Shown here: positions 20,401-23,037 of the stretch, piece after piece
Layout of the letters: the number at the start of each line of letters is the position of its first letter
How positions within the stretch are numbered: the first letter of the stretch is position 1
NCBI GenBank assembly: GCA_964234715.1
Contig: OZ174279.1
Length of the DNA stretch: 64,000 nucleotides
Source: Podarcis melisellensis
Taxonomy: Eukaryota
Strand: one strand, 5' to 3'
The notes under the pieces: generated by a model
The model's input: the letters and a program-made list of their open reading frames with translations, nothing else
Told to the model about the DNA's origin: nothing
Databases searched by the model: none
Made by a program: the position numbers and the translations under genes

Positions 20401-22980
20401 TTTGTCTTTTAAAAGAAGCTTCAGAGTTTGGGAACTTTAGCATGGACAAAGTGATCTCTGTCATCATTAGCAACTAACCCTTTGCCTTTTTCTTCTTCTT
20501 GGAGACACACAATATTCTTCAGTGCTTTGCTCCTCAAGGTTAGGTTAAGTAAGGCCACCACTTTCCTTCCATCAACGAAAAGTTGTCTTAGGGAAGCCGA
20601 ATGTTTGGGGGATTCCTCCCCTTGTAGAAAATCTCATGGTAATACTTGTTCCCCTGTTCCCATAAATAATAAAGTTTGCTTTAACATCTGTGTGCTGGAC
20701 CTAAGAAGAATCTGATATTGAACAGCAGATCCATTTGGTCTCTCCCATGTGTAATTGCAACTTCATTGCAACAAGAGGAGGGTTCTATCCCTCCACAGAG
20801 GTACTATCACAGCTTATTTTGCTAACTTTCAGATATTTTGTTTCTTAATTAGTTGGGTTTCTGTTCTTAGACTGTGCTTACTTCTCTGACATTTCAACAC
20901 CCCCTGCCCCCGCAAACCCAAATATTTTTGGAAATTTTAATTGTAGGACGCTAACTAGATGACTGCTCTCCGCAGTGCTTTCAGATCAGTTCTGCTGAGA
21001 AACTATTTTTTGAGGAAACTTGGTAGGTGCATGCGTTGCTTATAGGAAAGAAGTAAAGAAAAAAATACTGGGCATTATACTGTTGTGCTTCCTCAACCCC
21101 CCCCCCCCAATGTTGCTTCCCTCTGCCTCCTGTTTTTGGGATATCCAAGAAAAGGAAAGCCTCGGTTTAAAAGCTGCCCATCCTATTTGCTGCACTTTAT
21201 AAGTTATTGTTGCTAAATGATTGGGAACTGTCCATCACCAGCCAGAGAACTTGCAGTTTACTTAAGAAATTGCACGTGGGACAAAAGCAGCCGCTGGAGT
21301 GTGGTGGCCGCTGTGAATAGAGGGAGGGAAGGCAATTAGTTGCCGTGTTGTTGGAGCTTTTTACTTGTCAAACTGGAGCCTCATTGCTTTTGTTATTGCC
21401 ATGTAAAGGGAAATTGCAGGGTTTTGTTTTGGTATTAAGGGCCTTAACGGTTGCTGGCTGACACTTTACGTGCAAAGGCCAGATAAGTGCGGAAAAGGAT
21501 GGTGGTAAGAAAAGCAAACAGAAGAACTTTCTGTCTCCGTTGATTACATTCTGGCGAGTGTCTCCAGATTCTTAAGGTTTTGTCTCCACTTCTGAATTGC
21601 AGATTAGTCTGTACACCTGTAAAGTAATAATAGCAACAATAGTAATTAATACAGCAGGACAACATTGCAGTGACTTCTGTAGTGATTAGCGCAGCATAAG
21701 TTTTGAAACTGTCTTAAAAATCATTGTGTAGGTTATATTACTATATATAAAGGTATAAGGGTTTATGACAGGTCTTCTTCACATCTCCTCCAGATGAGTA
21801 TAAAATCTTTGTGGGTTTTGGACAATTCAGAAACTTTTTTGCTCTGATAAAATTAACTTGCACACCGAACTACTAATCATACTGAACCACAGATAGTTTT
21901 ACCTATCCATTGTGCTTAACTATATTACTGGCGCTTTCTTGTCAGGTATTTTGAGAGGTATCCACTATAGGTTTGACCGCATTCCCCCATAAAAACCAGA
22001 GCTGCCTTTGCGATTTTTGTTTCTTAAGTCAATACCAATCACAAAGGATGGATAACTTATGAATGTAGATGAAAAAAGAAACAGTTTTTCAGTTCGTGGA
22101 GGAATCTGCTCTCCCTTTTAAGCTCGTGCTTACAGAAACCAAAATATGCTTGCTGTAGCGAAATACCTTAGACAGTAAGACTGTAGAAAACTTGATGAGC
22201 ATTTCTTATACTGTTTTCATGTGAACCAACCTGTTTAAACCAAGAACCAAAAAATTTAATATTGGTAAAAGTTGGGGGCAAAGGAGAGTGATTACTAATG
22301 TGTCAAAATGATAACAAAATCAACTGCTTCCTGCAGGTCTCTCCTGAAGAAATTTGTTTGGTGGGAACTGACAGTGACTGCTTGTTACACTTAGGTGCTC
22401 CTGCTCCCTCATGGCTATCCGTTGTTGCCTCACTACGCATAGCATTACCTGTAACTATCTGAATCGTAGTAGCGTTGTCATTTATTTCCAAGGTAACTGC
22501 TTCTTTAGCTATCCTTAGCAAGCAAACGGAGGGGCGGTTGGGGGGTGTGTGTGTTTGACAGTAAGAGAATTTGTGTATCAGAAAACCGAAGTGATTATTT
22601 CAAGTTTCGAAATCTGCAACAGAGACAATCTTAGAAAATAAGACACCTTCTCTCACAGCCGACATCCGATGTCATGATGGATGCGGAGCATTCAGGGAAC
22701 GCCAGGCCTCAAATCTGGAAACATCTTGATCTTTTAGGACTGTACTTTAAGTGAAAAAACGCAGGCGGGGGATGGGAGGGAGTCAGAAAGTGAAAAGCTG
22801 CAAGGGAAATAATACAAAGCTAGTACAATTGGCATCTAGACAGTGAAGGGGGAAAAAGTTTATGAGATTAAGAGTGGGAAAGACAAAGCCGTTATGTACC
22901 CGAGGGATGCAATTTTAGTGGGAATGGAAGATTTGAGTGGTAAAGGAGGAGCACTCGCCTCTGGGTTCTCTCTGTTTCAG

Positions 22981-23016
22981 CAGTTTGGCTGTTGGCATCT
23001 CAATTTGAATTGCTGG
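22981..23016 (+). CDS. TCF7L2: Candidate in-frame 36-nt exon (QFGCWHLNLNCW), or the 3' end of an alternative first exon
   Basis: Acceptor ttctctctgtttcag|cag (tandem AG) and donor TGG|gtgagt; phase 0, no stop, compatible with exon 6. Confidence 0.5.
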
Positions 23017-23037
23017 GTGAGTAGCATTTGTGTTTAA

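Follow-up and report, generated by a model that had tools for sequence, protein, structure and literature searches.

A probable alternative first coding exon in intron 5 of TCF7L2, conserved between teleost fishes and lizards

The window, by which we mean the whole stretch of 64,000 nucleotides of Podarcis melisellensis DNA that was analysed, includes part of TCF7L2, which acts as a key effector of Wnt signalling in metabolism and in the developing brain. Exon 6 of the gene (...DPKT) was located at 33306-33438 (+) and starts in phase 0, opening with the full codon TCT; exon 5 was not found in the window. Therefore, a 123-nt unit at 22894-23016 (+), which lies 10.3 kb 5' of exon 6 and on the strand of the gene, sits in intron 5. 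The unit is the candidate coding part of an alternative first exon and comprises an ATG (MYPRDAILVGMEDLSGKGG...) and 40 further codons (MYPRDAILVGMEDLSGKGGALASGFSLFQQFGCWHLNLNCW). It ends in phase 0 at the donor TGG|GTGAGT, with 23016 as the final exon base and the 5' splice site GTGAGTAG at 23017-23024 (+). As the initial annotation had indicated, no stop interrupts the frame as far upstream as the ATG at 22894, within an ORF that spans 22843-23037; an in-frame TAG stop is found at 22837-22839. Inside the coding sequence, the pyrimidine-rich codons F-S-L-F and the following CAG CAG (Q29 Q30) occupy 22965-22983 (+).

On its 5' side the unit is preceded by a conserved purine-rich stretch (22724-22893, +), which aligns to five distant relatives with lower identity and with frameshifting indels, and which probably represents the exon's 5' leader, sequence proximal to its promoter, or both. 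The relatives carry a T-run followed by CAG about 175 nt 5' of the ATG. A non-coding exon may lie further upstream, or the exon may have an acceptor on its 5' side. On the 3' side, the donor is adjoined by the (GT)n(GA)n tract already described, consisting on the plus strand of the intronic microsatellites (GT)9.5 at 23038-23056 and (GA)13.5 at 23056-23082. Past it, a short intronic block, cttgaccattgaac, at 23088-23101 (+) is formed mostly by invariant columns of the six-way alignment described below.

Two readings had been offered for the 3' part of this unit: a cassette micro-exon of 36 or 33 nt entered through a tandem acceptor, or an exon that opens the coding sequence of a protein without the beta-catenin-binding domain. 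The motifs invoked for the first reading are indeed there. After the pyrimidine tract ttctctctgttt comes CAG|CAG, so that an exon could start at 22981 or at 22984, and both forms are stop-free, multiples of three and phase 0 like exon 6; the 36-nt form (22981-23016, +) corresponds to codons 30-41 of the first exon. The case from splice-site strength alone is weak. Four acceptor-donor pairs on the plus strand of the 64 kb reached the scores of the candidate with a crude weight matrix, two of them being real exons, and chance should give some 0.2-0.3 comparable in-frame pseudo-exons per 64-kb window. This expectation, based on splice strength and an open frame, is what favors a chance intronic pseudo-exon, but the conservation of the candidate across distant relatives and teleosts refutes such an origin, for which we see a practically negligible probability. 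Other candidates were also discarded. A dispersed repeat was rejected after self-BLAST of 22500-23500 gave microsatellite matches only, and an Rfam search of 22000-24000 returned no match at E<=1. RNA structure was not taken as evidence either: RNAalifold proposed a hairpin between the CAGCAG region and the donor, with no covariation benefit and with a z of -0.54 for the window fold.

For the 64-aa ORF, 16 homologous ORFs were recovered from other assemblies; the relatives come from a protein search based on ORFs, a procedure that favors open-frame copies. The contigs of five distant relatives (L001-L005) align to the window as islands only, one of which covers 22859-23055 with 79-83% identity; outside the islands, their introns are unalignable with the window. 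These five contigs and the window make up the six-way alignment, and the addition of a carp (L006) and a toothfish (L007) gives a set of eight sequences. All members of the six-way alignment (6/6) keep the ATG, the length of 123 nt and TGG|GTGAGTAG unchanged, and similarity collapses about 10 nt past the donor. In the larger set, the ATG, an indel-free length of 123 nt and a donor are kept by all (8/8); the donor is TGG|GTGAGT in the six squamate-like sequences and in the toothfish, and TGG|GTAAGT in the carp. A (GT)n run of differing length is present at the same place in 5/5 relatives and the (GA)n run in the window only, and neither of the two follows the donor in the carp or the toothfish.

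The distribution of the variable sites by codon position bears on the limits of the coding unit. From the ATG to the donor, the six sequences present 13, 1 and 16 variable sites at the first, second and third positions, respectively (Fisher p=1.6e-5), with a pN/pS of 0.32, and this is the sole frame without stops in all six. The 87 nt located 5' of the supposed acceptor show 12/0/14 variable sites and no indel, and the segment 22981-23016, nearly invariant in squamate-like sequences, shows 1/1/2 of 12 per codon position. Upstream of the ATG the counts are 24/21/23 of about 43, with no codon periodicity and with frameshifting indels. Given this periodicity and the invariant ATG and donor, and its absence 5' of the ATG, the coding unit therefore runs from the ATG to the donor and consists of 41 codons, not 12. 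The 33/36-nt cassette micro-exon is in this respect unsupported, since coding-type conservation extends 87 nt past its supposed acceptor, up to the invariant ATG.

Developmental genes such as TCF7L2 are typically rich in conserved non-coding elements, and intron 5 holds other conserved islands at 21171-21411, 27290-27481 and 31457-31643. The unit might be one more of them, a piece of a TCF7L2 enhancer or promoter with a chance open frame and splice-like motifs that enters no lizard mRNA. A search of deposited sequencing runs for this stretch returned DNA runs from six organisms, whereas RNA runs appeared under other species labels only and none was listed as containing the stretch. However, these three islands, taken as controls, lack codon periodicity, whereas the unit has a three-base periodicity with an almost invariant second codon position, and its exact length of 123 nt is kept while its flanks carry indels. 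In addition, the similarity between lizard-like and fish sequences is limited to the ATG-to-donor unit, and in fish the homologous sequence belongs to the annotated coding sequence of TCF7L2 isoforms. We consequently regard a non-coding element as very unlikely.

The fish sequences deserve further description. A profile search recovered 26 homologues, among them a protein of Dissostichus eleginoides named "Transcription factor 7-like 2" that begins with this peptide. The genomic loci of carp and toothfish contain a 123-nt ORF with a GTAAGT or GTGAGT donor located 4.8 and 5.4 kb, respectively, 5' of exon 6 and on the same strand. Nucleotide similarity between the lizard-like contigs and the fish is confined to the ORF, so that the carp alignments begin at the ATG and those to both fish stop some 6 nt beyond the donor. 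In nine teleost species, TCF7L2 isoforms annotated by NCBI, all of them pipeline annotations, lack exons 1-5 and present the leader MYPRD...W joined directly to SNKVPVV of exon 6. RefSeq isoforms with MYPRD...NLSSW at or near the N-terminus include Larimichthys crocea X18, Maylandia zebra X17, Odontesthes X17, Thalassophryne X24, Sander X19, Etheostoma cragini X17/18 and Lates X19/20. The exon is the first coding exon in every annotated isoform retrieved. In several fish isoforms the annotated coding sequence reaches about 190 nt 5' of the MYPRD ATG, and a related fish (P0041) has a contiguous genomic ORF with the homologous extension. At the sequence level, the exon is conserved from bony fish to lizards and the lizard unit is the squamate orthologue of the teleost exon. 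These orthologous isoforms, and the shared position with respect to exon 6, support the second reading of the initial annotation, that of a coding first exon for a protein without the beta-catenin-binding domain.

The splice partner in the lizard is deduced from phase compatibility and from fish only, and it could be argued that the exon is real but belongs in squamates to a different transcript, be it an independent RNA of the intron, non-coding or with a small ORF, or a messenger joined elsewhere than at exon 6. We consider this highly improbable, because the fish isoforms join the exon to exon 6, the phase-0 donor matches the phase-0 start of exon 6, and no other conserved coding island is found between 23017 and 33305.

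Taking these observations together, 22894-23016 most likely represents the coding portion of an alternative first exon that TCF7L2 has conserved in intron 5 and that serves a short isoform. By analogy with the fish, we infer that transcription and splicing proceed in the same way in the lizard. Transcription would start at an internal promoter region 5' of the exon, the ATG at 22894 would act as translation start, and the leader of 41 codons would be spliced in phase 0 from 23016/23017 to exon 6 at 33306. The predicted product is a short TCF7L2 devoid of exons 1-5, and therefore of the domain that binds beta-catenin, and would retain the Groucho/TLE-binding region, the HMG box and the C-terminal parts. 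Such a protein could sit on TCF sites without recruiting beta-catenin, as expected for the S-/dominant-negative TCF7L2 class. A purely coding reading of the exon leaves unexplained the constraint on synonymous sites in its last 18 codons and the retention of the acceptor-like motif.

Another aspect to consider is whether the exon has a dual use, with CAG|CAG serving also as a 3' splice site. In this case exon 5 would be joined, in transcripts of the main promoter, to 22981 or 22984 and then to exon 6, inserting 12 or 11 residues ((Q)FGCWHLNLNCW) beside the Groucho/TLE-binding region. The acceptor-like combination of pyrimidine tract and AG reaches scores like those of real exons in one or more registers in 8/8 sequences, including the two fish, and no sequence seen lacks both AGs. 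Codons 24-41 are unusually fixed at their synonymous sites: GGG24, CAG30, GGC32 and CTC36 are represented by a single codon in 8/8 sequences, while 0/5 comparable codons of the first half are fixed to one codon across the eight; the 36-nt and 33-nt forms are both phase 0, and the same intron holds cassette exons in other species, as exemplified by zebrafish exon 5 (PMC6908431). On the other hand, conservation at the orthologous loci, proposed from the beginning as a check, extends to the GT donor and the frame but to neither AG individually: L002 and L003 have AC in place of the first AG, and P0017/P0037, with Q-H at codons 29-30, lack the second. The tract is moreover broken by purines in 3/6 relatives, and the codon periodicity 5' of the "acceptor" is that of a coding stretch, not of an intron. 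No isoform retrieved carries this peptide between ...AHIV and SNKVPVV, a weak point given that the search was unable to score a 12-residue match. As for the synonymous constraint, it involves small numbers and is equally explicable by splicing enhancers near the donor. The use of the 3' third of the leader as an internal micro-exon as well is therefore a smaller possibility, which we regard as unlikely.

Returning to the alternative first coding exon, the short TCF7L2 may carry an N-terminal module of its own, formed by the 41 residues (MYPRD...G.SL.QQ.G.W.L.L..W), kept by purifying selection since the teleost-squamate ancestor and conferring a specific partner or a specific regulation. We put this forward tentatively, and with rather more doubt than confidence. 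AlphaFold2, run on the alignment of eight sequences, gave one low-confidence helix in the leader (pLDDT 64), which is uninformative. A specific role of the leader, if true, would fit recent data from mouse that suggest roles of S-TCF7L2 beyond antagonising the long form.

No new kind of mechanism is revealed by these results. The promoter in intron 5 and the class of short isoforms are already known in mouse, and what is shown here is the conservation of the leader peptide between teleosts and squamates. The description of a little-characterised isoform holds for the leader of 41 residues and not for the isoform class; a full-text literature search for the peptide fragments CWHLNL and MYPRD found no paper on the leader. 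In practical terms, a conserved leader peptide offers a precise handle on the short isoform, by means of an isoform-specific antibody, a knock-out or a tag, and the annotation of TCF7L2 in squamate genomes can be corrected. It also brings a caution, namely that a short open "micro-exon" between good splice motifs can turn out to be the end of a longer first exon.

Regarding other vertebrates, Vacik et al. (2011) reportedly found in intron 5 of mouse Tcf7l2 the alternative first exons Ex1b-e, which yield dnTCF7L2/S-TCF7L2. An internal promoter and alternative first exons spliced to exon 6 are established for this intron (PMC10208975; PMC3825142; bioRxiv 10.64898/2025.12.27.696670), with at least 10 such exons ("exon 5-prime" 1-10, Qi et al. 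2023) that account for about half of the brain transcripts (PMC10208975). Like the lizard exon, those of mouse lie in the same intron, 5' of exon 6, and have their own donor. They cluster within about 6 kb, and the lizard intron likewise has a second candidate first exon, at 20030-20243. The likeness is one of position and kind.

Internal cassettes are a different case. The zebrafish tcf7l2 cassette "exon 5" encodes 20 residues, GPFCLEFPGQTDLSLHQLQL (Young et al. 2019, PMC6908431), and occupies the same intron, where it separates ...SPSPAHIV from SNKVPVV and affects the region near the Groucho/TLE-binding site; unlike the lizard exon, it is internal, and the two have no similarity. No copy of it was found in the plus-strand frames of the window, where the best 20-mer match reached 8/20 identities in low-complexity sequence elsewhere. 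In human, the alternative exon "4a" of the Groucho-interaction region comes in two forms that differ in frame by 3 bp (Prokunina-Olsson et al. 2009, PMC2748888) and, to judge from the exon numbering of that paper, presumably lies in the same intron. The 3-bp variant resembles a tandem acceptor; exon 4a itself is an internal cassette. A scan of the window for the 4a peptide motif gave no match, an unreliable result.

Close counterparts are the teleost isoforms, for example Larimichthys crocea X18 and Maylandia zebra X17, whose first exon has the same length of 41 codons as that of the lizard, agrees with it in the donor and in the phase-0 junction, and likewise lies 5' of exon 6. The leaders of carp and toothfish are 56-59% identical to that of the lizard and 14 residues are invariant, including the GxW..L.L..W tail. 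The differences are that the middle of the peptide has diverged, that some fish ORFs start further 5' in the same exon, and that a (GT)n run follows the donor in the squamate-like sequences only.

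TCF7L2 exon 6 (SNKVPVV...DPKT) was located at 33306-33438 on the + strand, with further exons downstream of it. Exon 5 (YLQMKWPLL...AHIV) was looked for in the window and found to be absent, which places the site under study within intron 5 and puts no less than 22.9 kb between it and exon 5; for the same reason, absence from 1-33305, this intron must exceed 33 kb here. Five runs of N lie within 1-33305 (12306-12717, 13427-13686, 18875-19078, 19229-19465 and 31644-31805). The motifs described in the initial annotation are all present: a pyrimidine tract followed by CAG|CAG, with possible exon starts at 22981 or 22984; a donor TGG|GTGAGT with its boundary at 23016/23017; frames of 36 and 33 nt, each without a stop; and an upstream open frame that reaches back to an ATG at 22894, inside the ORF 22843-23037. 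The distance it gave is also borne out, exon 6 starting 10.3 kb downstream of the site. An in-frame stop (22837-22839) precedes the ATG, and the window holds no earlier in-frame ATG.

The splice-site weight matrix that we used was crude and served for ranking only. Four acceptor-donor pairs on the + strand of the 64 kb match the scores of the candidate, two of the four being real exons, and about 0.2-0.3 in-frame pseudo-exons of its quality are expected per window. Motif strength alone barely lifts the candidate above chance, and it is conservation that settles the matter. Apart from the candidate, a strong acceptor and a strong donor are paired outside the exons at just one place in the window (42209-42426, open frame ...VGSSNPRNG), which was read as tRNA-derived SINE-like sequence and taken as a chance pseudo-exon.

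Searches of Logan, ENA and NCBI assemblies with the 64-aa ORF returned 16 ORF homologues, with identities of 67-100%. For the nucleotide comparison, five squamate-like contigs (L001-L005) from this search were aligned to the window. They align in islands only, the 11-kb L001 in just three collinear blocks, which indicates that neutral intron sequence is saturated and that these contigs come from distant relatives. One island, 22859-23055, is common to all five, with 79-83% identity to the window. The six-way alignment shows no change in the ATG at 22894 or in the donor TGG|GTGAGTAG, and no indel in the 123 nt between them. About 10 nt past the donor similarity collapses, and the sequence 5' of the ATG has a lower identity and contains frameshifting indels. 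The -3 position of the ATG is a purine in all six sequences. A (GT)n run of variable length lies 10-25 nt after the donor in the six squamate-like sequences and is absent in the carp and toothfish loci. UG repeats are known binding sites of splicing regulators, and this run may tune donor use. In the window, where a (GT)n(GA)n tract was initially described, it is (GT)9.5 at 23038-23056, followed by (GA)13.5 at 23056-23082, the (GA)n run being restricted to the window.

From the ATG to the donor (41 codons), the variable sites at codon positions 1, 2 and 3 number 13, 1 and 16 (position 2 vs 1 and 3, Fisher p=1.6e-5), whereas upstream of the ATG, with about 43 sites per position, they number 24, 21 and 23. 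The pN/pS ratio is 0.32 in the proposed frame, the only one free of stops in all six sequences, and the replacements are conservative (A/T, I/V/M, F/L/V, S/T). No periodicity was found in three other conserved islands of intron 5. The homologue search route was biased toward open frames, but such a bias is unable to produce an invariant second codon position; therefore, the coding unit extends all the way from the ATG to the donor and comprises 41 codons, not 12.

This bears directly on the first of the two readings initially offered, in which the internal CAG|CAG is the 3' splice site of a 36- or 33-nt micro-exon. An acceptor-like motif gets a good score in each of the eight sequences, fish included, and synonymous sites are fixed in codons 24-41: four of the six comparable codons there are the same in all eight, compared with none of the five from the first half. 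However, this constraint could equally come from splicing enhancers beside the donor, and the supposed intron is itself coding: the 87 nt (29 codons) 5' of the acceptor show 12, 0 and 14 variable sites at the three positions. Neither AG is kept throughout, the first being lost in L002 and L003 and the second where the homologues P0017 and P0037 read Q-H. The peptide appears as an insert in no retrieved isoform, in a search that could not score a 12-residue match. This reading is probably wrong, and we regard such use of the acceptor as improbable. The CAGCAG region is also complementary to AATTGCTGG|GTGAG of the donor (22972-23021), and a hairpin there might hide the 5' splice site; the hairpin is predicted by RNAalifold, but with no covariation and with a window fold no better than shuffles, so it was discarded as evidence.

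The second reading, a coding first exon of a protein lacking the beta-catenin-binding domain, is most likely right, given the coding signature, the position upstream of exon 6 shared with fish and the junction annotated there. A profile of six 41-residue peptides, searched against 1.84 billion representative proteins, gave 26 matches, every named one from a teleost; among them, a Dissostichus eleginoides protein annotated as 'Transcription factor 7-like 2' has the leader peptide as its N-terminus. A word-based search limited to the leader retrieved NCBI-annotated TCF7L2 isoforms from Larimichthys crocea (X18), Maylandia zebra (X17), Odontesthes bonariensis (X17), Thalassophryne amazonica (X24), Sander lucioperca (X19), Etheostoma cragini (X17 and X18) and Lates calcarifer (X19 and X20), in all of which MYPRD...NLSSW is joined directly to the exon 6 peptide (SNKVPVV). 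In some fish isoforms the annotated ORF begins about 64-68 codons farther upstream. In a related fish (P0041) one contiguous genomic ORF includes the homologous extension, which thus most likely belongs to the same exon, of at least ~315 nt in those fish. The genomic loci of carp and toothfish have the 123-nt ORF on the strand of exon 6, 4.8 and 5.4 kb 5' of that exon, and its donor there is GTAAGT or GTGAGT. When the lizard-like contigs are compared with these two fish, only the ORF is similar in nucleotide sequence: carp alignments begin at the ATG, and those to both fish stop some 6 nt beyond the donor. The fish and lizard peptides share 14 invariant residues, mainly in the tail G.SL.QQ.G.W.L.L..W.

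We therefore consider it likely that 22894-23016 is the coding part of the squamate orthologue of an alternative first coding exon of a short TCF7L2. Transcription would begin in the intron-5 promoter region, the ATG at 22894 would start translation, and the donor at 23016 would be spliced onto 33306 in phase 0, giving a product that begins MYPRD...NLNCW-SNKVPVV...; that the lizard uses this exon, and that its leader has a role, is what we infer from the comparison. The 41-residue leader is ancient and, it appears, unstudied: a full-text literature search for its fragments CWHLNL and MYPRD gave no relevant paper. Its AlphaFold prediction was uninformative.

Other parts of the intron are also conserved. 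The island 21171-21411, which has 88% identity with the distant contig L002 and no codon periodicity, is probably a conserved non-coding element. Those at 27290-27481 (68%) and 31457-31643 (88%), shared with L001 amid unalignable intron, lack periodicity and are therefore likely TCF7L2 regulatory elements.

The class of short TCF7L2 isoforms, and its annotation in fish, is already known. The zebrafish tcf7l2 cassette 'exon 5' shares its intron with the lizard exon but has an unrelated 20-residue sequence, and no copy of it was found in the + strand frames of the window. In mouse, intron 5 of Tcf7l2 contains an internal promoter and at least 10 alternative first exons spliced to exon 6; these first exons encode dnTCF7L2 / S-TCF7L2 and give rise to roughly half of the transcripts in brain (PMC10208975; PMC3825142; bioRxiv 10.64898/2025.12.27.696670). 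A second candidate alternative first exon at 20030-20243, which ends in ...aaATG|gtaagc and would yield M-SNKVPVV if spliced to exon 6, lies 2.7 kb upstream of the exon at 22894-23016, an arrangement that fits a cluster of first exons as in mouse.
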